A stretch of 64,000 nucleotides of DNA, from positions 434,001 to 498,000 of the forward strand of contig RDEW01000005.1 of assembly GCA_011109175.1 (NCBI GenBank), written 5' to 3'. Positions within the stretch are counted from its first letter, which is position 1, and each line of letters begins with the position of its first letter. The translations under genes and the position numbers were made by a program. A model generated the notes under the pieces. That model saw only the letters and a list, made by a program, of their open reading frames with translations. It was not told where the DNA came from and searched no databases. The stretch is from Dicyema japonicum. Lineage: Eukaryota; Animalia; Dicyemida. Positions 1,611 through 63,510 of the stretch are shown in pieces.

Positions 1611-2586
1611 GGTACGCCGAACTATGCATTTCATATTCGTGTGCTTCCTGTGGCTCGTTTATCTTTTAAAAATATTTCACGAAGATCAAAGTTAGCCGGA
1701 AAAGTGCTTCTAATAGTACGAAACGATGGACTTATGATAGGTCGCCTTTCCAATGCCTCTGAGATCCTTAATACGTAAGAACCGAAGAACGTACCGTTGT
1801 AACTACGAGGATTCAGTTATGAAGAGAATGACTATCTTAAAGATTGTCTTAAGAGCTCTTAGAGACAGCTTTTACCGCCAATTTGGTCGTCAATATTGAC
1901 CTACGCAAGTGACCGTGATCAATGGCCATTTCCCGTTCTTCCATCCACAAGTTGACCGTAATCCAGAGTCATCAACCCTAGTTCCGAGTAAATGACTATT
2001 GAGACATTTATACTTGAATGACAACAAAAATTCGTAAGGTCGGTCAACCTCTCAAGCAGCCACCTCTAAGTCATCCTCATTAAAACTTCAAAAACTACCT
2101 GATATACGAGAGCACTACGAATCCGTATGGGAGCGGTTTAATATGCATGCCCCGATTTCGAATTCCTCATTGTCGGTTTGGGATTACTTAGTTAGATGGC
2201 ACATTCCTTTTAACTGAGTAACTTAGTGATTCGGATGTTATGGCTATTAGAATGCTCCTGGGTTCTAATCCCCCGCTGGCTATTTGCCCGAAGGTCTTCT
2301 TATGCTTTGACCCTTTCTTCCGTCGTTCAATTAGCGCGGATTGACCAGATTCAACCCTTTTTCAATGTTCCATCGTTCAATTAGGATCTCAACTCCTTTT
2401 CAGCGTTTTCAAGTCATTTCCTAGGACAACCATCAGAGTTACTCTTAACCTTCCTCCAGGCAAGCATAATAGCTTTCCAGGCCTATATTTGCTAGGGAAA
2501 TAGGCTTTACTGAAATTAAGCTCAAAAGACTTTGTGGATTAACTAAATGTAATTAGTGACGTTTAGTTGTTAGTTAAGAATTGAAA

Positions 2587-7484: not shown

Positions 7485-10064
7485 ATTAACCCAGGGACCA
7501 CCGAGAAAGAAAGACAAAAGAAATGTCGACTAGTTAGGTGATCCCAGTTCCCGCCACCAAACCAAATCCAGTAAATTATAATAATTAACTAGAATTTTAA
7601 TTTAAATTGTTGGTAGGCCAATCTTTATGGTCAAAATAACAATATTTATTAATCCCATACAATTTGCCAATTAGGGAATTGATTTGAGTGAATTTGATAT
7701 CGAAGCTCCATAGGCCCATGAGGCACAAGCATACTCAATCGTCGGTTTTAAAAGTTGATTGAACACGACGAGAGCGCATTCCTGTGACGGTGACTTTACG
7801 AGCGGTTTGATTATATTCAGTTTCCTGAGACCCTTTGTCATAACATTCTTCACATGTTGAGAAAATGTAATCAAAGGGTCAAATATCACTCCCAGGATAG
7901 TTGGACGGATCTGTAGTGGTAAGGAGTCTCCATAAATGTTCAAATCAGTGTATGTTTTTTTTGTCCGTGGTGAAGATTGTATACGTTGATTTATCCTGAA
8001 TATGGAGAGACGATTCAATTTCAACCAGGCTTCCAGGTCGATAATATGTGACTGAAGCTCTGATTTTGCTGTACTTACTTATTTGGTCCTGCAAGCGATG
8101 ATTAAGTCGTCAGCATAAGTGAGAAGCATTTATTCTGGTCATCCAGGGCAGGGTAAATAGTTGAGAAATAAGTTGAATAACGCCGGAGAGATGGGCGATC
8201 TTTGATGGACGCCAATTGGTAGGAGACGAGACCTCTATCTTGCGTGGTCTATACAGACACGTCCTCTTCTTCCAGAGAGAAAATTAGCTATCCATTTTTT
8301 CATAGCCTGCTGAATAGTGGTGTCAAAATCCTTATTTGTGTGTAATGTTCTCGAAACAGAATTGAACACCTTCTGGAAATCCAGGTAAACCATATTGTCC
8401 GTAGATGGCGTTTCGGTTCGTTGAATCTTTCTGATAAATATTGAGACAGTGAAATCAAATATGTCGTAGTTGAACGCTCACATTAGAAACTATGTTGTAA
8501 GTGGCAGTAGGGCAAATTGTGTTTAATTTTCCAGAGTACGAGTTCCTCCGTTAAGCGCGATAATGCGCATGTTAATGTAATTGGACGGTAGGAAAAAAAT
8601 AAGGTTTTTGGTTTTCCTAGTTTTAGGAGGGGTATTATAAGTGAGTTTTCCATTTGCATGGGATGACGTTCATGTTAGAAGACAAATTAATATTTGACGT
8701 AATTGACTGGAACATTACCATGGTGTTTTAGCAAAATTCGCGGAATGCCGTCAGGACCACATGTATAAGATCTCTTCATTGATCTTATAGCCTGTGTGAC
8801 CTCGGCATGCGTAAATAAATTGATCCACGAAGTTGGTTTAGGCAGTAAATTCTGAAGGACAAGAATGGATTTCGAGAAGTCCTTGTGACTTATGGATGCG
8901 TAATATTTCATTAGCTTGCACAGTATTTGGAGCAGAAAAAGATTCAGATTCATCTGATAAGTTTAGCTTGATTCGACGAATAGTTTTCCATAAAAGACTC
9001 GTGGATTTCATATGTCCAATAGATGATAATAGGCGCTTCCACGCCCTATCTTTCTTTTCTCTGATGAGCTTTGTAATTCTCTGATTTAAGCATTTTATAT
9101 TTTCAAATCAGAAAGGTTTGCAGATGATTCATCTTCAGAGAGTTTCTTTGTTTGACGAGGAGACAAGTTTCCGAGTCCAGATTAATTCTACGTGAGTTAT
9201 TGAATCGGCTCAGTTTTAATATAATAGGATTATGATCACTATTACAATGGTAGGAGACGTTCCATGAAATCTTCGGGCAATCCTAGAGGAAGCAATGGAT
9301 ATGTCGGGGAAGGTTGGGTTGTCATTTCCTCAGACTGGTCTCCTTGTGAAGATGTTCGGGTGATTCAGAATCACCATTTTTTCGAGAGTCGATAATTAGA
9401 CTCCCCCTCTTGTCTGCCGACTGGGTACTAAGCCATTGCGGATGTTTGGCGTTGAAATCCCCACATAGTAACACATTTCGAATTTCTTGTAGTTTGTCGA
9501 GCTTCGGAACATAGTTATTAGGACAGGATCCCGGCGGTGGAATGTAAATGCTGATTAGAATAAGATGTTCTGACCCATTAATAAGATTAATAGAAATTTG
9601 TTCCGCAATCTTGTGCTGTAGAATTAAATCATCCAATTGCGAGCTCACATTTTGGAAGGATAAACCGTTTTTAATAATTGTGAGTAAGCCACCACCACGT
9701 CCAATGCGGTCTTTTCTGATAGACATGTATCCAGGAAAAAGTGGGGTTGTACTCTTTGTAGAAAGTTTTGACTCCTGGATAAGGCAGATGTCAATCTTGT
9801 GCTTCGTTAATAAACATCGTAACTCCAGAATCTTTGTTTTTATTCCGTTAGCATTGAGTTACATATAACAAGGGGTTTTGGTCCAGGGTTTCGTTCAATA
9901 TCTCCAGAAAGCTATAGAATCCAGGGGAACAAACAACATCTCGAGTTTCCAGTAGAGCTATACCATCCAAGCATAAAAAGTCTGGATGGGGAAGAGCAAA
10001 TGGTTCTTTTTGGTGTATTACTACAATGAGCGCCACCACAAAAGGTGAACCACATGACGCCACG
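7485..10064 (-). mobile_element. Ingi/Vingi-like LINE, copy 1 (5'-complete, frameshifted)
   Basis: Structured 5' motif, LSGDIERNPGP 2A motif, APE (LLCGDFNAKHPQW), RT (DFQKVF, PIGVHQRSPISP, YADD at ~8110), ORF end GIT* with 3' hairpin. Confidence 0.9.
10000..10061 (-). ncRNA. Candidate HDV-like ribozyme at LINE 5' end
   Basis: P1 GGCGTC/GGCGCT with outer G-U pair, P2 TGGTTC/GAACCA, P3 ACC/GGT, P4 ATTG/TAAT, J4/2 CAAAAA. Confidence 0.6.
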
Positions 10065-10090
10065 TTTCATACTTTTTTATACAATTAGCG

Positions 10091-10149
10091 TGCGTCATGT
10101 GGTTCGCCTCGTCTGGTGGCCTCAGATAAGTGTATCCAAAAAGAACCAT
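10091..10149 (+). ncRNA. Candidate HDV-like ribozyme at LINE 5' end
   Basis: P2 10100-10105/10143-10148, P3 GCC/GGT, P4 GATA/TATC, J4/2 CAAAAA; P1 has one mismatch. Confidence 0.55.
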
Positions 10150-17044: not shown

Positions 17045-18420
17045 GGCACGTGTAAATGTATCTGGAGGTGTCATTGGATCCATTTGACAAGATGACGCCC
17101 AATACTTGGTCGCCATCAAAAAAGGATCATTCTCTTCCATACTCTAAAATTTACCATCTCTGATAAATCCGTAAAGCGTGTCATACCGGTTCTTCAACAC
17201 GATTCATTAATACGGTCCAGGCTTTGTTGCAATCTTGTTCGGATGTCCCAATCGCCTTGAGTTGTGACGACGTCGTTAGGATAATTAAGAAGAATATCAT
17301 TTTAGACTACCAGTGTAGGGAGATCGGCCATGAATAGGTTGAACAACAAAAGTGACAAAGGGGATCCTTGGGGGACATCATTCGGAAGAAGGTGAGAAAT
17401 AGATTTTGACAGTCCAATGCAGACACATCCCCTCCGACCGCTAAGGAGGTTAGGTAACCAGATTTTAAACTTCCCAGTAATTTTTGTTTGGTAAATTTCC
17501 CAAGTAAGAATCTTCCTCGACACAGCGTCGAAAGCTTTATGGACGTCAATAGAGCAAAGTACATTCTTTTGGTTTCCCGGACCTGTATGAAAAATCATAA
17601 CGCATAAGGTAGGCAAGACTGATGGTGAGTCAAAGTAGACCCCTCCTCTTTAAAACCATGTTGAAATGAAAATCTTTGACAAACCAGCCATTCCAAAACT
17701 TTCTACATCGAACATATTAACGCGACCAGGTTTCTATGAAGCCGTTTTTCCAGGTTTCAAAATTGGAAGGAGGTGTGCAAGTTTCCACAAGGCTGGAATA
17801 GATTTTTATTAATTGGTTGCATTTCCTCGTCAATTCAGTGATTTCATAATCATCAAGATTCTTTAGGAGGATCATTGGTATTTAGTCATGTCCGCTGAGT
17901 AGGTTGTTTTATGAGTTTCAATATATTTTTCGTGTCGTTGAAGTAAATCATATCTAGTTCCCTCTTCGGTTTACTGAGATATACGGAGGTACATCCAACG
18001 TCTTATGGTGGGATATTTTTACGTAATATTTTTCAAGTTATTGGAATCCATTGGGCTGTGATCCTCTTCACATGATCTTTTTTCTTCTCTTGAGACGTCT
18101 CGAATAGTCTTCAACTTCTGCAGTTGATCTATTTCGGTTCAAAGACGAAAGTACATGCATGCATTTCGATTTTGTGATTTGAGCTCCCAGGTTTTTATTT
18201 CATCGTTCAAATCCCTCAGCCAAGGCTTTTCCTCGTTAGTTGATCGGACAAACTTTATGACTCAATTCCTTCTTAAAGATGTCTCCCTCAGAAAACGATA
18301 CCAATTTTCCCAAGCTAAATGAATAATCTACGACCGAACTAAGAGTATTTATGAATCCCCAAATAATTTGAATTTTAGTGACATGGGAATTACAGACTGG
18401 AGAATTCCCGCCATCAAAAC
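17045..18420 (-). mobile_element. Ingi/Vingi-like LINE, degraded copy
   Basis: CSIDVHKAFDAV...PNDVPQGSPLSLLLFNLFMADLP; YADD degraded to YPND. Confidence 0.85.
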
Positions 18421-21560: not shown

Positions 21561-23403
21561 GAATATTGACATTCTCCCTCATAAATTGGATATAAATTAG
21601 TTTCCCCGTGGGGTGTCCTTATTGATTAGCTTACATTCACAGCCATACCATCCGAGATGTCACAACTTTTAGTCCGAGAAATTTTAGAAAATTTGAAATT
21701 TGAGGAACCTTGCAAGAAGTTGATAAATATTCTCAGCTAACCTATCATGCCTTTCTATCTGAAGGCATTGATCACACGTGGGGATCTTTGGCAACCTCAA
21801 AGATGATCTCGTTTTTATGAATGACCAAAGTCGACACAAAACCCGAAGCAATGACACCTGCACATCTTCAGATCAATTCATTTGCTCCCTCGTTAGCGGA
21901 GTTTATTACATGAAAAGTGGAATAGGTTCTTCCTGAAATCACAGTTCTATCATCCTAAATGCTGAGGATTTCGATGGGACCACAGACGGTTGTTGTAATT
22001 CTCAAGTTCTCAGTTTTTCTGGAAGGTATTCGACAACTGTTCCTTTAATGAATTTAAAAGTTTAGTCATTTCGAGTATCAAAGGTGTATTTTTGTTTCGT
22101 TGTCCCCCTCCACATCAAGTCAGTCTTTTTTCCTCGGAAATACAATATGCCAGTTCAACATGTTGGTTGAAAGGAAAGATGAATTCTTCATCAGACGTCT
22201 TAATTTTACGTTAGTGTTTGATTACCGTGTTTTTCAGAATTTATTTCAAAACGACTAATTGGGTCTCCTCATTGCATTTTCTATGGATGACTTATTCTAT
22301 TAAGTCTTAGAGACAACTACATCCCAGGTCCTGTGGAATAATCTTAACTGGAGGTCGTAAGGAAACGAGATCTCTCTGACAAGTAGGTCACAGTTGTCTC
22401 AAATTGTTTGAGGAGGTCATGTGGAGTAATTCCAATTTCAATGAGGGTTATCCCATTGTTCATTTTGCCATACAATAATATACCGCATCTTTGTTTCAGT
22501 CATATTGAAGTACAAACTCATATTTTTACAATATGGGTCGATATTAGTGATATCTCTTTAACACCCTCGATCTTCTGATCTGATTGCATATTTTCTGCAG
22601 ATATGCAAATGGATGCTCCTCACAACTTAGTGTGTCGTGGAAAATAAATCACAGTTTAGCATTTGTGGATACACCAAGAAAGTATTTGTACCCATGGTCG
22701 CTAAAGCAGAAGTCCCTCCAATGTCACGCAAGTCCATCCACAACAACGGAAAGGAAAAAAATGTCCAATCCTTGAGCTGTGGGAATTCTTCCAGTAGAGC
22801 GGAGGAGACCAAATGGTCCTTTTTTGTAGGCAGTCTGGGCAGTGTTCCAGATAGTATGACTTCCGGTCCGAGGGATGTTCATAGGACTTGGCCGTTTTGA
22901 GAAAGTAGTGCTGGCGTTCTGTGAAGTATTCCACGATTCATCCAACGTTTGGTGTTTTTCGTAGCAAGATGCGTGAGTATGTTTCAACAATCTCAATAAT
23001 ATTCTAATACATAAGTTTTGTAACGCCTACTGTTTATTCTGTGTCGCTAGCGAGAACGGGGCAATCCATTTTCGCAGGCAAACACGATGCTCAGTAGAAC
23101 AAATTGTCCGTATAGAAACTCCAACGAAAGTATGGAAGACACCGGGGATATGAAAAAGCTTTAAGAATTCCAACTTTCTTTTGAATCCTCGAGGTCACCA
23201 GGTCCACTTGATGTGTGAATGATTACAATGGGTCAAGGGTAACTCCCAATATTACATAATAATAAAGCCTTATTAGTATTTATGGCTCCGCATAGGCAGG
23301 ACACACACTTTATTTAAGTAAAAAACAGTTATTATAACTATTCGTAGAGGGAGACTCTTCATTTCTTTGTTTTTTTCTTATGTGAGTGTCCTTTCTAGAC
23401 AAT

Positions 23404-23561: not shown

Positions 23562-25600
23562 ACGAATGGAAATTAAGCACAATATTGGATTACTGGATTT
23601 GAACGGAAAGATGCCTGATGAATTATGGAATGATATGCATTTGGTTATCAGGAACGCTGCAATAAAACATGTCAAATACAAAACGCCGGCCAAGTGCTCT
23701 GAGTGGCTCTCTGCCAACACCCTAAACATTGCTGAGGCTCGTAAAGCTGCTAAAGTCTCTGGGAATAAACGAAATAAGAAAACTTAACTCTGAATTCAAA
23801 AAGGCAGCCAGAAGATAAAGAAGACTACTGGAGGTTACGCTGCAAAAAAATGGAAGATGACTATATAGAGTCACACTAGGAATGCGTATTTACAACTAAA
23901 AAGATTACGAACCCCTTTACAAAAATGATGGGCAAAATCAAGGACAAGGATGGTGTAGAATTGCTAAGCCAACAGAACATCCGAAATCGTTGGAGAGAAT
24001 ATACGACTATATTCAAAAACTGTGTGCCCACCCATATATGTTGATGAAGCAACGTTGGGTGAGGGGCATAAAATCCTTGAGGAGGAATGCGTGTGGGCTA
24101 CACGGCAATTAATTGGGGAGCAAGGCACCGGGGATTGACAACATCTCAAGCGAATTGTTGAAGGCTATACCGGTGACAGCTATCACCAGTCTATGTCAAA
24201 AAATTTGGGAAACTGGTATTTGGCCACGTGAGTGGAAAAGATCTATATTTATTGGGTGGAAAAGTGGAAAAGACCAATACCGAAAAAGGGGAAAGCAAGG
24301 ACTGTTCAAACTATCGTACAATAGCCTTAATTCCCCACGTCAGCAAAATACTTCTAAAGATAATACAACATCGTCTAATGCCGAAACGATTCTACCGGAT
24401 GTCCAAGCAGGATTCAGGAAGGGACTAGGCACACGTGACCATATACTAAATGTTCGGTGGATTATGGAGAAAGCTCATGAATCCCAAAAGAGTGCATACA
24501 TGTGCTTCATTGACTATCGGAAAGCTTTTGATTCCGTTATACATGACAAACTGCTTTAAAAGAATTTGGATTCGATGCCAATCTGATATTGCCTATCAAA
24601 TCTCTTTATAAGGATCAAGAAGCTACTGTTAGAACAGTGTATGGAAATACCGATTGGTTCTAAATTTGTAAAAAGGTAAGACAAGGATGCTTATTATCTC
24701 CCATCATATTCAATATTTATGCCGAAATGATCATGACTAAATTGGATACTGTATCAAATAACAGGATTAAAATTGAAAACAGAAACATCAATAATTTGCG
24801 CTATGCTGACGATACAACCTTACTGGCTGAAACAGAAAATGACCTCAGGGAGTTGATTCTAAGATTCAGAGAAGAGAGCGCCGTTTTGGTTTATTGCTAA
24901 ATATCAAGAAGACCAAAATTATGACGACTGCTAATAATGGAACTAAAAATTTGGAATGGGAAAATAGAGAGTTGCGATAATGTTGTCTTTCTGGGATGTC
25001 TAATTAATCGGAATGGTGACGGAGGCTTGGAAATCAAGAGGCAAATTGCCATGGGCCTTACAGAAATGAATAGAATTTGGAAAAGCAAAGATATTTGCTT
25101 AAGGACCAAATGCACACTGGTTAATGCAATCGTGTTTCCGGTTTTTACGGAGCAGAATCATGGATACTGAAAAAGGCGGATAGACGAAAAATTGATGCTT
25201 TTGAACTGTGGTGCTGGAGGAGGTTACTAAAAATCCCTTGGACTTCTAAAATAACTGCAACATCTGAATATCAAGGTTGATTCGTGTCAAAAAAATAAAA
25301 TTTCAAGGTCAAAATGTAACACGATAGAATTTGTAACGCCGATGGCGCGCCACATTTTGCTAAAAGGAAAAATCGTAAAACACAGATTGGCGTTCTTTGG
25401 GTATGTTGTCCGCTCTGACTCCATGGAAAGAACCATTATGCTGAGCAATATTAGTGAAGACCTGGTCGACCGAGGAGTCGGTGGTTATCCACGGTGGAAG
25501 ACGTCATGGTGATGCCTATATCAAGGCTACTCCAAATTGCGACGGATCGGGGAGAGCGGAGGAAACTTGATCATGAGATCCCCAAGGGTCGGACACGACT
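23562..25600 (+). mobile_element. RTE-clade (BovB-like) LINE, 5'-truncated and degraded
   Basis: KAPGIDNI...NYRTIALIPHVSKILLKII...VQAGFRKGLGTRDHI...FIDYRKAFDSV, RQGCLLSP, YADD; ends GGTCGGACACGACT. Confidence 0.9.
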
Positions 25601-26190
25601 TATTATTATTATTATTATTACCCCCAGGATCACTGGGTCAAAGAGAAAGAAATAAAAGTTCTCATCTAAGTGATCCCAGACCGACAAAGGTGAGGACGAG
25701 TCCGGCGGGGTCGAGAATCCTGAACAGCTCTTCTCATTGGACATGGCATCGGCTCAAAATTTCTGTATGATTGTAGATAATTCGATAGTATTTGGAATAG
25801 AGGGCAGCTCGGTAGGATAGCCTCCTTTAATAGTTTCCGTTGTAGTTCGATTAAAAAGTTTTCAATAGGTTGGATATTGTGAGCTGGTCCAATTAACCTT
25901 ATTGCAGTCTCCTCGATTGCAGATAATTTTAATGAGGAAGATCGTGACATTTGCATTGCCCATGAAGGACTTGCATGCGTCATCGTTGGTCGGATAAATT
26001 GTTTGTAAATCGTGGCAAGGACACCAGTTTGGTCTCTAAGTGTTTTGAGAGCACTTTGAAAATTCTCATTTTTTCAGAGCAGAAGTTACTTTGTTTTCAA
26101 CATGCCGGATAAAGGTGAGTCCCTGATCAAAGGTTACTCCCAGGATCTTCGGTGTTTTGTTAATAGAGATAACTGGATAACACAACATAA
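25601..26190 (-). mobile_element. Ingi/Vingi-like LINE, 5'-truncated copy
   Basis: KILGVTFDQGLTF...THASPSW...CRSGIT*, 3' hairpin and (TAA)n tail at 25600-25620. Confidence 0.85.
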
Positions 26191-26198
26191 CATATTTA

Positions 26199-29060
26199 TT
26201 ATTATTATTATTTAAGCCAAAGAAACACCGTCTTAACCAATAACTAATATTCAGGTGATCCCGGCATCTCTCAATAATCGGGCCATTTTTTCTCGATGCT
26301 CCGACTGTGATCCCACGCATTTTCTATACGGACGGGGGTCTTTTTCCTTTCCTCTTCTGAAATTGCCTCCAGTTGCCTCTATGATAGACTCGAGTGCTCT
26401 GGGGGCAATTTCTTTATCTGTATATTTTTCTAGTAACTTTTTTGCTCTTGACTGGATATCTTGAATTTTTGTTAGGTTCGTTGCCGACAGGTTAGATCCC
26501 CATGCAGCACATGCATAGCCTATTGTTGGCTCGACATACTGCTTGTAGAGGGTCCCGATACCTGGCGGATAAATTCCTCCACAGTTCCAAAGGAAGGCCT
26601 TTACAAAATTGATCTTCTTTGCACAGGTTGATATGATAGATTCCACATGGGCTGAGAAGCAGAGGAAAGTATCAAAAGTTACTCCCAGTATCTTCTGCGA
26701 TTTCTTTTGTGGTATAGGTACTCCATTTAACGTGACATCAATTGTTTGCGTTCCCATCTTTCTATTCTTAGTAAATAGAGTGACTGCTGACTTTTCGGAA
26801 CATGCATTTAATCGATTCTCGCACAACCATCCAAATATGTTATTTAGTATTCCTTGTAGTCTTTCTTAGCATGTTCGACGTTTACGTCTCTAGATGCGAC
26901 AACTATGTCATCGGCATAGGAAAGTAGTATGTCATTATTATTCATAGGTACGGGGAGATCACTCAAAAACAAATTAAAAAGGATTGGTGACAGAGGAGAT
27001 CCTTGGGGTACACCATTGGGTAATAATCCCGATCTGGAACTCTTGTTTCCGACGGATACTTTCCCTCGGCGTCCACTTACGAAATTTGCTAACCATAACT
27101 TTAATGGTGCATCAATTTTTGTCAAAAATATTTTTCGTATGAGGATCTTCCTTGGGACAGAGTCGAAAGCTTTTTGAATATCGATCGTACATATGACCGA
27201 TTTTTCCTGTTTTGGCTTGTTCTTGTGTCCTTCAGTTATGAACTTCATTAATGTTGTTAGGAAGGAGGTTGTTGATAATCCTTCCTTGAAGCCATGTTGG
27301 AATGTAGGTTGTGGGAGAAAAGGGCGAATAACTTTTAGGACCAGTTTCTCCAGGATCCTCGACAAAACACATATAAGGGAAACTGGTCTGTAAGAGCCGG
27401 GATCGTTCTTCGGTCTTCCCGGCTTCAATATTGGTCGAATTTTTGATAGTTTCCACAAAGTCGGTATGGTATTTCTGTTCAGCGATGTGTTGTAGATGTT
27501 TGTTAATGCATTTATTGATGCTGGGCCCAAGTGTTTCAGCAGAATAAGAGGAATTCCGTCTGGGCCACATGAGTTTGTTTTTTTCTGATTTGATATTGCT
27601 TTGGATACATCTTTAGGGAGAAAATAAATCAGCGGGGCAAATTTGGATGGCTTTCTCTTTATTTTCGTTTGTGTGTTAATCTTTTTATAAGGAATGTGAC
27701 TGATTCGAATACAATGTTTCATATATTTATTCAGATTGAGCTGGCATTGTTCTTTGTTATCTTCGTATTCTGGGTTCTTCAGACGCCTCAACATCTTCCA
27801 CATGTTGGAAATTGAGGTCTGGTTATTCATGGCAGCAGAGATTCGCATGAGTTTCTTCCTTTGGGTGTTGTTTGTGCTTTTCGTGATAAGAATGTTTAGT
27901 GACCTGATTCGATTAATAACCTCTCGTGAACGATGTATCATTTTCTTAAGGTTGTTTCTTTCCATAATTATTTTCCTTGTTTTTGAGTCGTATTTCAATT
28001 TTTCGTTTTTTATATATGCTTTTCTGATAAAAATATTTCTCCGTCAATGATTGTTTTGTTGAAATAGTATACAGCTTTGTCTATGGAGGAGAAATTTTCA
28101 GTTGGAAATGTTGCAGTTTTGAATCAACGAAATTTGTAAAGCCAGTCCAATTTGCATTTTTGTAATCATAGAAATGAATAGGCTTCGGTACAAAGCGTGG
28201 CTCGCAGTTCAGCTTCATTAACATTGAATGGTGGTCGCTCCGGAGGTCATAACGGACCGTCCAATTAATGATCGTGGAAAGACGAGGTGAGCAGACGGAT
28301 AAGTCCGGAGATGTCACCATGTCCTTCGTGTTGTATGGTGTCCTAGTGTTCTTTTCGGGTTGTTGATGATTATTAAGTTTTGCATTTGGGATAATAGCAG
28401 GTTTCCTCTGTTATCAGCGGATTGGTAGCGGAACCAAGAAGGGTGCTTCGCATTAAGGTCTCCACATAAAAGCAAGTTCTCCAGTTTGTCCAAGGTAGAT
28501 AGGTCAAAGGAGAAATTTTTCTTGCAGGAGCCAGGAGGAGGAACATAAACATTCGCAATTTCAATTTTTCCAATGGAAGTTATAACAGAGATTCCAATTA
28601 TCTCCGTGTTCGAGTCTTCCATTAAGCTCTTGTAAAGAGAAGGGTTCTCGAGGTATTTTATTCCTTTTCTCACAAGAGTCAGTAGACCCCCTCCTTGCCA
28701 GATGGGCGGTCGGATCTTACTGTGTTGTATCCGTTAAAGAGAGGAGTAGGAATGTTATTTGAAAGTTTCGTTTCCTGGAGAAGGCAGATGTCCACTCTGT
28801 TCCTCTCCAAGAATAAGGAAAGTTCGGCAATTTTTCCTCTGATCCCGTTTATGTTTAAGCTTTGGATTGTTAACTTCTTTGGGCCTGGGTTTTGTTCCAC
28901 GTCTCCTGAGGTCAACAGTCTCAATCGATAGAATGTTCCAACAGTGAGAGAATGCCGTCCAGTGGGAAGTCCTCTGGTTGGTAGACAGCAAATGGTTCTT
29001 TTTAGATATAGTTTAGGACTATACCCGACGCCACCAGAAACGGTGAACCACATGACGCAC
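26199..29060 (-). mobile_element. Ingi/Vingi-like LINE, copy 3 (best preserved)
   Basis: Structured 5' motif, TSGDVEQNPGP, APE (NINGIRGK, LQET, LLCGDLNAKHPSW), RT ORF 26844-27998 (PQGSPLSP, YADD), C-terminus DAGIT*, (TAA)n tail; no RNase H. Confidence 0.93.
28992..29058 (-). ncRNA. Candidate HDV-like ribozyme at LINE 5' end
   Basis: P1 GCGTC/GGCGT, P2 TGGTTC/GAACCA, P3 ACC/GGT, P4 TATAG/CTATA, J4/2 CTAAAAA. Confidence 0.6.
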
Positions 29061-29312
29061 ACAGTGTTTTCCTCATCCATGTCTTCGAGATCCCCCTGAC
29101 ATTAAACGAGAGTAGGTTGAAACCATCCCATTGAATCTTGTATTTTTCAGACTGCATTTAAAGAGCCACGTCACTAACTCAACCAATTTATGACGCACGC
29201 TAAAATTATAAACATAAATAAATTCACATTTAATTAATTAAAAATCATTTTTAAGATAAATAATAATAAAATGTTTTGTTTTAATATTTTAAAAATAAGT
29301 GGGTTGTTGTGA

Positions 29313-38779: not shown

Positions 38780-39000
38780 TACCTTAGGATCACCGATTTA
38801 AAAGGAAAATGAAATAGTTCTTAACTAAGTGAACCCAGACCGACATGAGGAGATCCTATCTGACGTGGACGAGAATCCTGGATGGCTCTCCAGATAGGAT
38901 GTTGCTATATCATATCTAGCAAGGTTTTAAGGCACTTGTTCATGACTTCATAGAGATGACTTAGACAGAGTAAGTGCCCTCACCATCTTCTGTCGTCATC
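38780..39000 (-). mobile_element. Ingi/Vingi-like LINE 3' fragment
   Basis: Closely similar to 25670-25760, including the terminal hairpin. Confidence 0.75.
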
Positions 39001-42917: not shown

Positions 42918-45440
42918 AGCGTGGTGTTATGTGGTCCACCAATTCAAAAAATTCAAAAGGATTTGGCAACGCCCAGAGGGCTTCTAATACCCTCCCGAAA
43001 AGAACCATTAAACCCCTTCCCCCCGGGGTCATTATCGACCCCCGGCGATGTGTTTCAAGAAAGTCCAAACATTCCCGGCGAAAACTCTCAGCCCACTGTG
43101 GTGAAAAGAAATTTACTGCTCTCCAACTAAACATCAACGGAATTAAAGAAAAGGTCAGGGAACTCCGGTCAATCCTGGCAAATCAGAAGATCGACGTGGC
43201 CATGATTTAAGAAACTAAACTCCGCATGCATGATTCCACTCCTTCATTCCCTGGATACGAGGCAATCAGGATGGACCGTAAAAAGAGAAGAGAGGGTGGA
43301 CTACTTACTCTATTCAAAAAGAACCTGAAATGTAGAGAGATTACTTCGGAAGTGAGGAAACTTGTTGGAAATTACGAGGTTACTGAGGCAATTGGAATCT
43401 CGCTTGGGACAACGAAAGGAAGTATGTGCCTCGTGAATATCTACTTGCCTCCTCCCGGCTCCTGCCCAAAGGACTATGTTATTCCAAACCTATCAAGATT
43501 GGCTATCTACGATGAGAAAATCATATGTGGAGATTTAAAGCAAAGCACCCATTATGGTTGTCAACCCAACAGGCCGACACGAGAGGGAAGCTATTGTTAT
43601 TGAAATCGGACTCCCTAACAATCTGAACTATCCAGCGAAAAATACAAGGACTCCACTCAGAGAGACGGATCAGCTTTCCTCACCGGATGTAACACTCTGC
43701 TCATCGTCGCTTTCATCAAAAATTGATTGGTCAGTCCTCTACGAAACAATAAGCGACCATAATCCAATTGTGATGAAGGTCATGAGAGAAGTCAGAGTGA
43801 GGAGAACACCTGCTAGTTATAACTACAAAGCTGCTAATTGGGAATTGTATCGCGCAATCTCTGATGATAGACTGAAGAATTGTTACTTGGTTAGCTCCAA
43901 ATCGCTAGAAAAAGCGATCAAATACTTTACTTGCACAATCCTAGAAACAAGTATATTGGCTATTCCAAGCATCGTCTAAACTCCTCTAATCGTCAAGGGA
44001 AGTTGTCATTGATCAAAGAAAGAATTCACCTCAAAAATTCTAATTGGATCACATTAAAAACGAAACTCCAGATCAGAGCTCTAAACAACGAAATAAAGGC
44101 CAGAGAGTTCAAGGCCCAGAAATTGAAGTGAAATCGGATTCCTACAAAGGTAAATCGCAACCGTAGTACCGGAGAAGTGTGGAAAGCCATCCGAAATGTT
44201 GCAAAGGAGAAGAAACTTCCCCAGAGGATGACTATACTCAACGAGACGTTAACAATTTGATAAAATTCTACACAAAAATTTCGTACAAGGAACACAGAAA
44301 GTCGAAAGTGCTTCTCTCTTCACGCAGAAAACTGAAGAAGGATTCTAACCCAGTATACTTCTCGGATGGAGACGTGAAAAATGCGCTGCGTTTCACAAGA
44401 ACAACGTACTCTGCCGGTCCCGACAACATTCCAGTAGTGTTATTGAAGAACCTTGGAGATATTGGAGTCGGTGTATAACTATTCAATTAATTGTAATGTA
44501 ATACCGTTGTTATGGAAGCAAGCCAACATCCGACCTATACTGAAACCTGGGAAACCTAAGGAAGATCCGGCATCATTTAGACCTGTGTCATTGTTATGTT
44601 CCGTATCGAAAATCCTGGAGAGGCTTGTGCTTGGGAGAATCAAGGCTTTCTTACCAGAAAAGGATTTTCAACACGGATTCAAGAGCGATTGTTCTACATC
44701 AACGTACCTACAGAAATTAACCAACTTCATTAGAGATGGTTTTTCAAACAAACCAAGGCATTTGAAAACAGTCTTGTGTTCCATTGATATTAACAAGGCC
44801 TTTGATTCTATTTCGAGAAAAATATTATCAAAGAAAATTTTCCAGTCGGAGATCCCGGGGAAGCTTAAACTTTGGATAACAAATTTCTTAAGTGGACGAA
44901 GGGACGTGTATGCCTCGGAGGACTGAAATCAGTCTCGCGTTTTCTTCCAAACGGTGTCCCCCAAGGATCTCCTTTATCCCCCGCTTTATTCAATTTATAC
45001 CTGGCCGACCTCCCGACACCGGAATCCAATAACGATGTTCTACTCACATATGCGGACGACATTGTTTTGGCCTCGCGTGATCGGGATATCCAAAATGCTA
45101 CAGAAAGATTACAAATTAACCTGGACCGACTCAACGCCTGGGTAATGAAGAACCGACTCACGGTAAATTCCAGAAAGTCGGTCACGTCTATGTTTACTTC
45201 GGACAAAAGGTTGGGGAAGATGACTGTCAAGTTAAAATTGGACAACGTTGAAATCCCCTTCACCAAATGTCAGAAGATCCTGGGCGTGACACTGGATACA
45301 CACTTATGTTTGTCACCACACGTGGCAAACATTGTTCTGAAGTGCGAAAAAAGCACCGGGAAAGAATGAGGATTTTGGCGGGGCGCATCAGGGTCACGTG
45401 ATAGTTAGTTTTGGTTTTACCGTGGTCTTGGGTGTTAAAT
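42918..45440 (+). mobile_element. Ingi/Vingi-like LINE, copy 4 (5'-complete, no recognisable 2A, 3' ORF shortened)
   Basis: MWST...PKRTI...QLNINGIKEK (APE), FRPVSLLC, PQGSPLSP, YADD, terminal GGGTCACGTGA hairpin. Confidence 0.9.
42923..43007 (+). ncRNA. Candidate HDV-like ribozyme variant at LINE 5' end
   Basis: P1 GGTGTT/AACGCC (covaried), P2 TGGTCC/GAACCA (one mismatch), P4 GAGGG/CCCTC, J4/2 CGAAAA; L3 is enlarged by a tandem AATTCAAAA duplication. Confidence 0.45.
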
Positions 45441-45757
45441 AAATGACTAACTCGTAGGAGACAGCGGCTATTAAGTAGGAATTAACAAATGATGTCGCTA
45501 AATAAATCATCAGTGTTGGTATTGTAGACGAACAGTATACTAATTCAGGAAATTACTAAAAGGAATGTTGTCTACAGAAGACATCTCTTATCTCATCCAT
45601 ATTACGTACATCGGTAGAGAGAGTAGTGCCGAGTTTTCGGATGGTTTTCGTAGAAACAAAATCGTTTATCTGTTTCAAACGACCCTGTCAACTTAAATAG
45701 TTCACAAACAAATATCGACATGGTGAACAGAGTTATTCATAACTTTTATAAACATTT

Positions 45758-45830
45758 GCCTTGGTGGTGAAGTGGTTATCACGTTCGCCTTACACGCGAA
45801 AGGTCCTGGGTTCAATTCCCAGTCGGGGTA
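45758..45830 (+). tRNA. trnV-TAC: tRNA-Val (TAC)
   Basis: Cloverleaf with D stem GTGA/TCAC, anticodon stem TTCGC/GCGAA, loop CT-TAC-AC, T stem CTGGG/CCCAG, discriminator A, followed by a T6 Pol III terminator. Confidence 0.85.
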
Positions 45831-60530: not shown

Positions 60531-63510
60531 TATTGCTTACCAGTTTCTCCCCTCACTCTTGGATCCCTCAACTGCCGAGGCCTCAATCAGTGCTACAAGA
60601 AACAACAATTGGCGCGTGATCTGAGTAAATACAACATCTCTGTCTGTTGTTTGCAAGAGACGAAAATAACCGAACAATCTGCAGAACTGTTTCAGAATTT
60701 TTACCTTTTGACCCTCACACCAGACTGCAGGCACTATGGGCTCGGATTTGCTGTTCATCGGCACTTGTTTCACTGTGTCTCAAGAGTATGGGCAGTATCT
60801 GACCGTGTCGCGGTGTTACAAATCAAATGCGGAAACAAACTCAACTCAGTGATCTCCATCATAAATGTATATGCCCCAACCGGAGCACGTGTATCAACGA
60901 ATATCGAAGAACTGGATACGTTTTACTCTACTCTCACAAGTGTGTACAACTCACTTTCATCCTCTTACTTTCTTTTATCGCCGGGGACTGGAACGCCAGG
61001 GCCGGAAAAGCAAGACCTGGTGAAACGTGTATTGGATCCCACGGTAGAAACCGCCGTAACATCCCCGGAGAGGCATTAATACAATTTTGCACGGCATTCA
61101 ACCTACTCATATGCAACACTTGTTTCAAGCACCCGGCAAGACACAGGACCACGTGGGTTGGTACCAGAAAAGGCAAATCTGGAAACACAGTCAATATATA
61201 CAATCAGATCGACTATATTATCTGCAAGCAACATCAGAAGGCCCTCCTACAGGACTCGAGATCTTACGGTGGACTTGAAACAAGTAGCGATCATAAACTT
61301 GTGGTCGCCCGGCTAGTACTTAAAAGAATCCATGGAATACACGGGAAACACAAAGGCCTTACCTCAGTACGTTTCGACACTGAGAGGTTACGCTACGAAG
61401 AATCCACCAAATGTCGTTATAGTGCAGTTCTGAGAGATAGCATCAACAGTATTAACCAAAATCAGCCGACAAACAGCTTATGGGATGAAATAGTGGTTGC
61501 TATCCAAAACACAGCCTTTAGTGTGCTTGGTCACATCACCAAATCTCGTCACAAACAATGTAATCCGGATATCGGACAACTCTCTGTAACACAGAAAGAG
61601 CTCAGACTCCGGATGGAAAACACAAACGCTCCGGAAGATATCAAAGTACTGCGCACCCAGAGAGGGAGAGTCTTAACGAAGATCAAACAAATACAAAGAT
61701 TCCTTGCCAAAAATGAAGCTGAGGAGAAAATCTCAGACATATTAAAGTACAAGAACGGACCAAGAATGTTCAAAGCAATCCGGCTTCTTAGCAGAGAAAA
61801 CTGTCCAATTTCGTTAACTGTCCATGACAACCTTGGTCACGACGTTATCGGGACCATTAACAAAGCAAACGTTCTGGCATCCCATTTTGACCTTATGTTC
61901 AACAAACAGGACGCGGCTGACCAAGCAATGAAATCTCGGAAGTCTTACAAGTACACTCTAACTAGCCCTATTACCATATCCGAAACTCAACAAGCTATTA
62001 AAAAATTAAATACCGGAAGATCTGCCGGACCAGACTTCATTACTGCAGAACTTTTACAATACGGCCCGGAGGAGCTAATTGAAATGATTACTAACATTTT
62101 CAACCGGTCTCTCGAGGGTGCAGATGAACTGGAACTGGGAAAAGGGTGGCTAATTCCACTACAAAAACCGGGAAAAAGTAAAGGCCCCCCTCACAACTTC
62201 AGACCTATTATACTCCTAACCTCCATACGAAAAACATTATCCCTCATTGCTTTAAACCGAATAAAGGAGAGGGTGAACATATTTCTTTCGGACGGCCAAA
62301 GTGGATTCCGGACGGGCAGGTCCACGGCTGACGTGGTATGGGGGCACAGGTGGTATTGTGCCCTGTGCCAAAAATACAAAAAATCTATTGAGATACTTGG
62401 TATCGACATGTCCCGTGCGTTCGACTCGGTGGACCGTGGAAAACTTATGGAAGTGTTGGAGAGTTTTCTACTGCCTGACGATGTCAAAATAATACACTTA
62501 CTCATGCGGAACACTCAACTTGCCGTCAAAATTGGTGACTCTACCTCTAACTTTTTTTCGACCTCACGTGGAGTTCCACAGGGGGACTCACTATCCCCGG
62601 TCCTCTTTATTGTCTACCTTGAGGCCGCACTAAGAGAGTTCAGACCCCTGGTTGGCAACAATTATAACGAGATAATCTACGCGGACGACCTGGACTTTGT
62701 TTCTGAGGATATTCAAGTACTTCAACACATGCTTAACGTTCTTCCACACGTATTCTCGAAATGGTTCTTAACCGTTAACACCGATAAAACAGAGTTCACA
62801 ACACTTACACGCAATGATCGAAGATCGGACGAGTCTTGGAGAAAGCAAAAGAAGGTGGGTTCGCTTCTCGGGGACTCAGAAGATGTTTCTCGGAGGAAAA
62901 TCCTCGCAATGTGTGCACTAAAGAAAGTATCGAATATGTGGGGTCATAAGAAGAGGATGGGATTAAACACCAAACTCAGAATATATAAGGCTTTTGTCAT
63001 CCCCGTCCTGACCTACAATTCAGGCACTTGGGGAATCTCTAAACAAGAGATGGACCGTCTTGACGCTTTCCACAGGACACAATTGAAATCAGTAATCAAG
63101 ATCAAGTGGCCTAAGAAGATCTCAAACAATGACCTCTACTCGAAGTGCAAATCTGGTATACTATCCGAGGAGATCTTCAGATCAAGATGGAGTCTCTTTG
63201 GACATATCTTACGTCTAAATGCTCAAGTACCCGCGAATATCGCCATGGAAAACTACCTAATGCATACGGGAGCCGGTTTCCGTGGAAGACCAAGAGTCAC
63301 ACTCCCAACTATTTTGAATGGAGACCTGTCGGCTGTGGGACTGAAGCTCACTTCCGCAGACGACCTAGATACCTTAAGGGAACTGGCACGAAGTAGAGGG
63401 TCCTGGAAAAGGCTGATAGAGAGGATGGCTAGAAATACGGCACAAGGGAGGCTTGATTAATTTTATGACTTCTCGGGAGTGCTTTAAATAATAATAATAA
63501 TAAATAATAA
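60531..63510 (+). mobile_element. Near-complete RTE-group LINE with target-site duplication
   Basis: APE plus RT open for ~2.9 kb with a single frameshift near 60975; (AAT)n tail; 12-bp TSD TGACTGGTTCCG at 60519-60530 and 63511-63522. Confidence 0.97.

Follow-up and report, generated by a model that had tools for sequence, protein, structure and literature searches.

An HDV-topology double pseudoknot enclosing the start codon at the head of 2A-containing LINEs

Several old LINE copies in the 64,000-nucleotide stretch of DNA analysed here (the window) open with the same predicted RNA fold, which raises the question of what that fold does for the element. The original prediction held that four copies start with a covarying double pseudoknot of HDV topology, and that self-cleavage at its base accounts for their common start. 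HDV-like ribozymes are already known at LINE heads, where they process R2, RTE and L1Tc RNAs and assist their translation; L1Tc shares the 2A design described below, and the elements are not a new class. Rather, the host is new for a device already described, and the pseudoknot holds the start codon and is followed by a 2A peptide, an arrangement found likewise in distant relatives.

Results

The fold at the LINE heads is real and is an HDV-type double pseudoknot, spanning the first 60-85 bases of several old LINEs with the start codon inside it (Table 1). All four predicted sites exist, within 1 nt of the positions first proposed, and these window heads (c1-c4) share the helix order P1-AUG-P2-P3-L3-P3'-P1'-P4-C(N)A4-5-P2'. 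The nested double pseudoknot order, P1-P2-P3-P3'-P1'-P4-P4'-P2', is found in c1-c4, in a more diverged window copy at 17067 and in two copies in an Octopus sinensis contig (o5 and o6). In c3, the nested minimum free energy structure returns P2, P3 and P4 as drawn. The degenerate second head near c3 opens with TTAGCGTGCGTCAT and has lost P2'.

Table 1. Positions of the head folds and associated LINE features in the window
Feature	Position	Strand	Remarks
c3 head fold	28993-29058	-	match to strict descriptor
c3 P1 / P1'	29054-29058 / 29028-29032	-	
c3 AUG within J1/2	29051-29053	-	
c3 P2 / P2'	29045-29050 / 28993-28998	-	
c3 P3 strands	29042-29044 / 29033-29035	-	L3 29036-29041
c3 P4 region	29006-29027	-	J4/2 CUAAAAA 28999-29005
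c3 six nt upstream of predicted cleavage G	29059-29064	-	CTGTGT, homologous to TAGCGT elsewhere
c3 leader ORF	28880-29053	-	58 codons; AUG inside fold to 2A motif GDVEQNPGP
c3 body	25600-28879	-	APE pieces ~28317-28879; RT 26847-28043
Degenerate second head	29128-29203	-	~75 nt upstream of c3 head
c1 head fold	10001-10061	-	P1 GGCGTC/GGCGCT, 6 bp, G.U closing pair
c2 head fold	10092-10148	+	single mismatch in P1
c4 head fold	42923-43007	+	long-P3 subtype; P1 GGTGTT/AACGCC
Further, more diverged copy	17067-17129	+	P1 GGTGTC/GACGCC

Compensatory substitutions maintain P1, P2 and P3 from one diverged subfamily to the next. The proposed covariation of P1 is borne out in this sense. The helix is 5 bp in c2, with a C/C mismatch, and 5 bp in c3 (GCGTC/GGCGT); it is 6 bp in c1, c4, o5, o6 and the 17067 copy. 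Its closing pair is G.U in c1, c3 and o6; in c4, o5 and the 17067 copy, G-C closes the helix. P2 had been described as TGGTTC/GAACCA throughout, but c4 reads TGGTCC/GAACCA, with one C/A mismatch. Across subfamilies P2 alternates in a compensating fashion between TGGTTC/GAACCA, TGGTCC/GGACCA (an O. sinensis copy) and GATCC/GGATC (the 17067 copy, which has ATT/GAT as P3, a weak P4 and no downstream LINE ORF). In the compact copies P3 is 3 bp and L3 is 6 nt (TTTTGT, TCGTCT, GTTTCT, TGACAA), but in c4 the segment first labelled P3 is a long interrupted hairpin. An insert of 23-35 nt forms such a hairpin at P3/L3 in c4, o5 and o6, placing 7-9 bp within L3 of these c4-type copies; the insert in c4 is 23 nt, 9 nt of which are duplicated in tandem.

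As had been proposed, P4 forms a hairpin whose sequence is free to vary. It outperforms shuffled sequence in c3 (p ~0.001), c1 (0.04) and c4 (0.03), is weakly better in c2, and in the 17067 copy is no better than shuffles. Its pairings can be redrawn in two copies, with c1 better described as TGTA-GUAA-TACA and c3 extendable to 9 bp. In J4/2, the predicted C and the run of A before P2' hold up, the C column being invariant and followed by an optional N and four or five A; however, the C lies 6-7 nt from P2' instead of 4. The description of the core as non-canonical, with a short P1, a 6-nt L3 without UYCNCG and CA following P1', is accurate. The L3 consensus is approximately UUUUCU and holds no CG-containing motif. 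J1/4 is CA in most copies, with a UG partner in L3 in c1 and the 17067 copy alone; in c3 a CU could pair with GG, and the P1.1 register is not conserved across copies. The elements that a catalytic core should conserve most strongly (L3, P1.1 and the spacing of the J4/2 C) depart furthest from the canonical form and vary in part among the copies, whereas compensatory change preserves the helices.

Support for the fold comes from homology and covariation among the copies. Seven copies were usable for covariation, all of them old and decayed. Across these, 89.5% of P1/P2/P3 cells pair, compared with 30-50% in slid-partner controls, which preserve the relatedness of the seven copies. Double-sided changes occur at four pairs, P2 TGGTTC/GAACCA versus TGGTCC/GGACCA among them, and the covariation score of 0.397 exceeds the shuffle mean of 0.309 and was matched by 3 of 500 shuffles. 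A homology search with the RT piece returned a single octopus protein (P0141) and therefore yielded no large alignment of the same family. A strict descriptor of the fold finds c1 and c3, but a lone descriptor match is not significant because ~0.7 such matches per 64 kb are expected from shuffles. One further match, at 38930-38987 on the minus strand, sits within the 3' portion of a different LINE copy and was set aside as chance. Rfam models of the HDV family gave no match in the window at the gathering score, nor did they match the heads or any of 40 related loci; for the c3 and c1/c2 regions the search stayed empty even at E up to 10. We consider this null weak and uninformative, as a canonical-looking fold in the related element L038 (7-bp P1, L3 TTCTCGT) was likewise missed at E up to 1.

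The copies do share a start at the fold, but their alignable sequence begins ~6 nt upstream of the P1 G, an exact boundary that rests on comparison between copies. TAGCGT lies directly upstream of the predicted cleavage G in c2, c4, o6 and the degenerate head at 29203, and the same six positions read AAACGT in c1 and TAGAAA in o5. TAGCGT is kept across several subfamilies, in both the window genome and O. sinensis, and o5 and o6 have ~8 further upstream nucleotides in common. The persistence of TAGCGT or a variant upstream of the predicted cut bears directly on the proposal that cleavage accounts for the common start. This proposal is not supported by the sequences, because a template cut at G1 would lose its upstream bases in every retrotransposition cycle; the logic stated for R2 is that cleavage removes all upstream sequence (PMC3774820). 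The genomic corollary of self-cleavage, copies starting at nucleotide 1 of P1, fails in c1, c2, c4, o5, o6 and the degenerate head. Self-cleavage is doubtful, given these retained bases together with the short P1, the non-canonical L3, the unconserved P1.1, the long L3 hairpin of one subfamily and the lack of an Rfam match. By inspection, no conserved pairing joins the 6-nt extension to a longer P1, to L3 or to sequence following P1' or P2'. Target-site duplications of c3 are unconvincing, its flanks sharing only GTGT.

Downstream of the fold, the conserved J1/2 AUG begins a leader with a 2A peptide at its end, and APE and RT come next. This AUG is in frame with 2A or APE in c1, c3 and c4. In c1 (AUG at 10053-10055) the frame leads to the 2A motif GDIERNPGP with one intervening stop codon, and in c4 (AUG at 42929) it reads into the APE domain with no 2A; in the decayed c2, the 2A motif DVEMNPGP lies downstream of the fold, out of frame with the AUG. 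The 2A is located in the N-terminal part of one continuous APE-RT ORF design, with no evidence of RNase H or an ORF1. Pfam detects Exo_endo_phos and RVT_1 but has no match in the C-terminal piece, and a protein homology search with the c3 N-terminal ORF gave no matches. The c3 body also includes a C-terminal part with a frameshift and, at 25600-25620, a (TAA)7 tail. No DNA segment is better conserved between subfamilies than the head, at 75-89% of primary sequence compared with 64-73% for the APE coding region, and the leader peptide blocks MWF and PKRTI recur among copies. Protein coding does not explain the conservation, because an F-to-S codon change in P2 is compensated at the RNA level. 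Deleted derivatives retain the head module: o5 consists of the head and an internal piece of a c4-type element, o6 has no downstream LINE ORF, and the 17067 copy is a third case.

Distant 2A-LINE relatives were drawn from a metagenome scan made with a narrow alignment, and include soil and marine elements. In four of these (L010, L013, L014 and L002), a fold of the same topology with unrelated helix sequences stands at the contig or element start, with a P1 of 6-7 bp, a CAAA-type J4/2 at canonical spacing and the start codon within or beside the fold. The metagenome folds are cleaner than the window copies (7-bp P1, CAAA before P2'), and two folds of that quality were observed compared with 0.2 per set in shuffles. 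In the relatives L001 and L042, the descriptor shows no clear fold upstream of the ORF.

Discussion

Our analysis points to a pseudoknot of HDV topology that is descended from a ribozyme and kept as a structured module for translation start and the 5' end, its cleavage being either weak or lost, and we give this reading an even chance of being correct. The fold heads single-ORF, 2A-containing APE/RT LINEs of an octopus-type genome together with their internally deleted derivatives, and under this reading the module would derive from the HDV-like self-cleaving ribozymes that head L1Tc, R2 and RTE-type LINEs. Cleavage at the base of P1 would be weak or lost, and the 5' end would not be set by it. 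By analogy with the literature on R2 and L1Tc, we infer that the elements keep the fold as a structured 5' module presenting the start codon for unconventional, probably cap-independent initiation; it may also protect the RNA 5' end or mark it for the element machinery. The 2A would afterwards shed a leader peptide whose sequence the RNA structure dictates. Several features count against this preferred reading, as the invariant J4/2 C, the G.U closure in c1, c3 and o6, and the exact topological match to proven LINE ribozymes are all traits that an active ribozyme would show.

These same traits favour a compact HDV-like ribozyme that is still active, in which read-through or promoter-driven transcripts would be cut 5' of the P1 G, and the resulting 5'-OH element RNA, beginning with the fold, would also support initiation at the J1/2 AUG. 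The helix order, position and orientation match the proven L1Tc, R2 and RTE ribozymes (PMC3185411, PMC3774820), P1, P2 and P3 covary, J4/2 joins its invariant C to an A-rich run, and relatives have a 7-bp P1 and CAAA at element starts. In addition, L1TcRz is active with a 1-bp P1.1 (PMC3185411), and a reduced core is for that reason compatible with catalysis. The 6-nt extension could belong to a line of templates that were not cut, with cleavage persisting in active masters. However, cleaved templates would lose the ~6 nt conserved upstream of the predicted cut in all subfamilies, P1 is merely 5-6 bp, L3 lacks a CG motif, J1/4 offers no conserved P1.1 partner, the C stands too far from P2', a long hairpin is tolerated within L3 by the c4-type subfamily, and Rfam gives no match. 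On balance, we view continuing cleavage as rather unlikely.

It is improbable that conservation acts at the DNA or protein level, through an internal promoter or the leader peptide MWF..GG..PKRTI, with the pairings incidental. The higher conservation of the head relative to the APE coding region and the recurring peptide blocks fit this explanation, the invariant TCATGTGG includes an E-box-like CATGTG and the TTAG start resembles an initiator, and Pr77 of L1Tc is a precedent for a dual-use head (PMC3383444). Yet a promoter or peptide predicts neither double-sided compensatory changes, nor P4 hairpins of unrelated sequence, nor the recurrence of this topology in distant relatives whose sequence is unrelated, and the leader is released by 2A and otherwise unconserved. 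A promoter role could exist alongside the RNA fold. Still less credible is a chance fold, in which related repeats are alike through common descent and happen to admit a loose pseudoknot. The loose descriptor does match shuffled sequence at the rate given above, nested-fold z-scores are weak (-0.1 to -1.6), and among seven related sequences kinship alone can beat shuffles; against this, pairing falls sharply in the slid-partner controls, compensatory changes separate the subfamilies in P1, P2 and P3, and the topology recurs independently ahead of a homologous ORF in relatives of unrelated sequence.

A close parallel to the module we favour is L1TcRz/Pr77 of the L1Tc/ingi clade in Trypanosoma and Leishmania, a likeness of layout: there too the first 60-80 nt form an HDV-like fold, and the APE LINE that follows has a single ORF with 2A at its beginning. 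That head is likewise common to internally deleted or short derivatives (NARTc, RIME and SIDER), tandem double heads occur in SIDER2, and P1.1 is reduced, to 1 bp in L1TcRz (PMC3185411, PMC3383444, PMC4035085, PMC3894237). Some well-folded NARTc and SIDER copies do not cleave (PMC4035085), and the deleted derivatives carrying the module here parallel these elements. In contrast to L1Tc, the AUG of the window copies lies inside J1/2, L3 and J4/2 differ, the host is read as a cephalopod, and 6 nt are retained before the predicted cut; in L1Tc, by comparison, ribozyme +1 is the first base of the RNA. The HDV-like ribozymes of R2, R4 and RTE share the nested double pseudoknot at the LINE 5' end, a covarying P1 and freely varying P4 and J1/2, and for R2 a contribution of the ribozymes to translation initiation is reported (Ruminski et al. 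2011, as cited in PMC3774820). They differ in having a ~7-bp P1 and a highly conserved ~15-nt P1.1/P3/L3 core (PMC3774820), which is the least canonical part here, and in that cleavage removes their upstream bases, which persist in our copies. Relative to canonical HDV and CPEB3, the helix order, the 3-bp P3 of compact copies, the J4/2 C followed by A and, in some copies, the G.U pair at the cleavage site are the same, but P1 is 5-6 bp instead of 7, L3 is 6 nt where 7-8 nt is usual and lacks the conserved C/CG, P1' is not followed by a GG that could form P1.1, and J4/2 is 6-7 nt. Metazoan 2A (StopGo) single-ORF APE LINEs similarly encode D(V/I)ExNPGP in the N-terminal part of their APE-RT ORF, and one from the mollusc Aplysia falls in the Ingi clade (Odon et al. 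2013, PMC3708506). Unlike our analysis, the papers on these elements (PMC3708506, PMC3894237) do not link the 2A leader to a structured head; the word ribozyme appears 0 times in both, and 5' RNA structure is likewise unmentioned.

The arrangement suggests a reason for the 2A, which would free the enzyme from a leader whose sequence serves RNA structure. More broadly, and tentatively, with the balance somewhat against it, metazoan single-ORF 2A LINEs may have a common design in which an HDV-derived double pseudoknot enclosing or adjoining the start codon serves mainly as a non- or weakly cleaving 5' module, the 2A jettisons the structure-forced leader and derivatives inherit the module. This would span the window and octopus copies as well as the unrelated soil and marine metagenome elements. 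If so, the module would serve cap-independent initiation, end protection or RNP recognition, and deletion derivatives and SINE-like parasites would use it as a handle on the LINE machinery. The copies also form a natural series, from canonical-looking folds with a 7-bp P1 and CAAA to degenerate ones with a short P1, an L3 hairpin and retained upstream bases, which offers a way to examine when such a fold outlasts the loss of its catalysis.

Head folds in the window and further copies

The four diverged LINE heads (c1-c4) all run in the order P1, AUG, P2, P3, L3, P3', P1', a short hairpin, C(N)A4-5 and P2', in which P1 reads GGCGTC, GCGTC or GGTGTT, P2 is TGGTTC (TGGTCC in c4), P2' is GAACCA, and P3 (ACC or GCC) and P3' (GGT) enclose an L3 listed as 6 nt. 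The original prediction of the same ordered pairings in four copies holds for the order at 4/4 sites, and we have amended small drawing errors: P1 is 5 bp in c2, with a C/C mismatch, and 5 bp in c3, P2 of c4 contains a C/A mismatch, and the c4 'L3' is a 23-nt insert with a 9-nt tandem duplication within it. The c1 and c2 heads (10001-10148) lie head-to-head, 30 bp apart, as a long imperfect inverted repeat that accounts for spurious Rfam miRNA-precursor matches at E 0.5-5.

Positions of the head folds, profile-detected copies and folds in distant relatives
Feature	Location	Strand	Basis or context
c1 head	10001-10061	-	ordered fold segments
c2 head	10092-10148	+	ordered fold segments
c3 head	28993-29058	-	ordered fold segments
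c4 head	42923-43007	+	ordered fold segments
diverged head copy (17067 copy)	17067-17129	+	head profile
partial head match	near 22804-22828	-	head profile
degenerate second head, P2' lost, starts TTAGCGTGCGTCAT	29128-29203	-	head profile
o5, c4-type head	L041 25789-25878 (O. sinensis VCDQ01001570.1)	-	head profile
o6, c4-type head	L041 28879-28975 (O. sinensis VCDQ01001570.1)	-	head profile
same-topology fold	L010 4-111	coding	upstream of homologous ORF
same-topology fold	L013 3-99	coding	upstream of homologous ORF
same-topology fold	L014 637-747	coding	upstream of homologous ORF
same-topology fold	L002 274-351	coding	upstream of homologous ORF

Further heads were sought with a profile built from the heads. 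The degenerate head precedes that of c3 by ~75 nt, and this tandem recalls the double Pr77 signature of SIDER2. No LINE ORF was found downstream of o5, o6 or the 17067 copy, and in o5 the head is fused to internal sequence from a c4-type element (matching window 45385-45444), indicating that these copies are deletion derivatives, with like counterparts in the NARTc and SIDER elements of L1Tc (PMC4035085).

Comparative support for an RNA fold

Our strict descriptor returns ~0.7 matches per shuffled 64 kb, and a single fold alone is not significant; the support for the fold is comparative, drawn from aligned sequences. Across seven copies (c1-c4, the 17067 copy, o5 and o6), 89.5% of the P1/P2/P3 cells pair, compared with 30-50% after a 1-3-column shift of the partners. 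Both-sided changes occur in four pairs, and the covariation score of 0.397 (shuffle mean 0.309) is reached in 3/500 shuffles. P1 covaries as claimed, at position 6 (C-G vs U-A), and compensation is also seen in P2 (TGGTTC/GAACCA vs TGGTCC/GGACCA in o5 vs GATCC/GGATC in the 17067 copy) and P3 (ACC/GGT vs ATT/GAT). P4, described as a hairpin of changing sequence, indeed differs in each subfamily; the 9-bp hairpin of c3 clearly exceeds shuffles (p ~0.001), and those of c1 and c4 do so at p ~0.03-0.04. Nested MFE folding of c3, o5 and the L013 relative recovers the drawn P2, P3 and P4, and the head is more conserved than the APE coding DNA.

It is highly probable that this is a genuine fold on which selection acts at the RNA level, and very improbable that it arose by chance. 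Conservation at the DNA level, as a promoter, or as a peptide is unlikely; one P2 change replaces Phe by Ser, yet the RNA pairing is compensated, so peptide selection is not the explanation. A separate descriptor match with HDV topology at 38930-38987(-) falls in the 3' portion of another LINE copy and is probably due to chance (~0.7 expected per window).

LINE bodies, start codon and 2A

Pfam identifies Exo_endo_phos and RVT_1 downstream of c3, whose 3' end is (TAA)7 (25600-25620). By blastx, 4/4 copies match APE/RT LINE proteins with frameshifts; they are diverged lineages with 64-77% DNA identity where alignable, and their similarity starts at the head. The J1/2 AUG serves as start codon, and the c3 leader that begins there has 58 codons and finishes with GDVEQNPGP right before the APE domain. 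The c1 AUG shares its frame with GDIERNPGP, with one stop codon between, that of c4 continues in frame into APE with no 2A on the way, and that of the decayed c2 is out of frame. A tRNA-like sequence at 45758-45830(+) (Rfam tRNA, 61.8 bits), within the expected span of the c4 body, may be a tRNA-derived SINE insertion. The longest ORF in the window, intact and ATG-started (60827-63460(+), 877 aa), may be another retroelement.

Distant 2A-LINE relatives

A protein search with an RT piece gave Octopus sinensis P0141 as the only named close protein, together with many LINE proteins with N-terminal 2A motifs. Among 40 loci from these relatives and a metagenome scan, L010, L013, L014 and L002 carry the same topology with unrelated helix sequences, a P1 and P2 of 6-7 bp each, long P4 stems and CAAA or CCAAA directly before P2'. 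Under a strict rule, 2 matches of such quality were observed vs 0.2 per shuffled locus set. In L010 and L014 the fold contains the 2A-leader ORF's first in-frame AUG; no AUG in that frame was found in L013, and in L039 this AUG immediately precedes a tentative fold that was drawn by eye and not recovered by the descriptor. This shared layout indicates that a pseudoknot head followed by start codon, leader, 2A and enzyme is a feature of the clade and not an accident of the window. Several unrelated members of the clade (L002, L014, c4 and o5) have an extra hairpin inserted in 'L3', the loop equivalent to L3 of HDV ribozymes. Such an insert is atypical for the family and could point to an active site that was lost or altered.

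The 5' region of another 2A-LINE relative (P0006; L042 1-90) starts with four tandem 18-nt repeats and has no recognisable pseudoknot. Metagenome contig OGCC01000024.1 (L038) holds a canonical-looking HDV-like fold at 2063-2183(-), on the strand opposite to its LINE APE match, with P1 GGGGGAG/CTCCCCT including a G.U pair, P3 ACC/GGT, L3 TTCTCGT and CAAA before P2'; Rfam gave no report for it at E up to 1.

Cleavage and alternative readings

Self-cleavage had been invoked to explain the common start of the copies, but alignable sequence begins ~6 nt upstream of G1, the first P1 nucleotide, and hence of the predicted cut. These 6 nt are TAGCGT in c2, c4, o6 and the degenerate head, TAGAAA in o5 and AAACGT in c1; beyond them the upstream sequence of c1-c4 is unrelated, and o5 and o6 have ~8 more bases in common (~14 nt in all). 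As template self-cleavage strips all upstream sequence every cycle (PMC3774820), the retained bases must have been templated from uncleaved RNA. Sequence comparison thus offers several arguments against a cut at the P1 base in the window family. It is in the catalytic core that these heads depart most from the canonical form, with a P1 of 5-6 bp, an L3 close to UUUUCU, a J1/4 of CA without a conserved P1.1 partner, an invariant C placed 6-7 nt before P2' and, in the c4-type subfamily, a 7-9-bp hairpin accommodated in L3, whereas in R2 ribozymes the P1.1/P3/L3 core is exactly what is conserved (PMC3774820). Of the proposed compact HDV-like variant, the double-pseudoknot topology and the non-canonical core are supported, and cleavage as what sets the 5' end is not.

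An active self-cleaving ribozyme, as first proposed, is possible but rather doubtful. In favour of catalysis, the C of the predicted C(N)AAAA after P4 is invariant, three copies have G.U closing pairs, and the L1Tc ribozyme L1TcRz functions with a 1-bp P1.1 (PMC3185411). However, the fold alone does not show activity, as some well-folded L1Tc-clade heads do not cleave (PMC4035085). Rfam models gave no match for the fold in the window or in the c3 and c1/c2 heads, which is weak evidence because the canonical-looking L038 fold was missed too. Most likely, the window-family head descends from HDV-like LINE ribozymes. We favour, at roughly even odds, a structural module that has been kept although it cleaves weakly or no longer at all; the module would present the start codon and the RNA 5' end, and the 2A would remove the leader peptide encoded by the RNA structure. 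The metazoan 2A-LINE papers (PMC3708506, PMC3894237) make no mention of ribozymes, and our literature search returned no paper joining octopus, retrotransposons and HDV ribozymes. The closest known system is the Pr77/L1TcRz head of L1Tc/ingi elements, with its 2A and deleted derivatives (PMC3383444, PMC4035085, PMC3894237).
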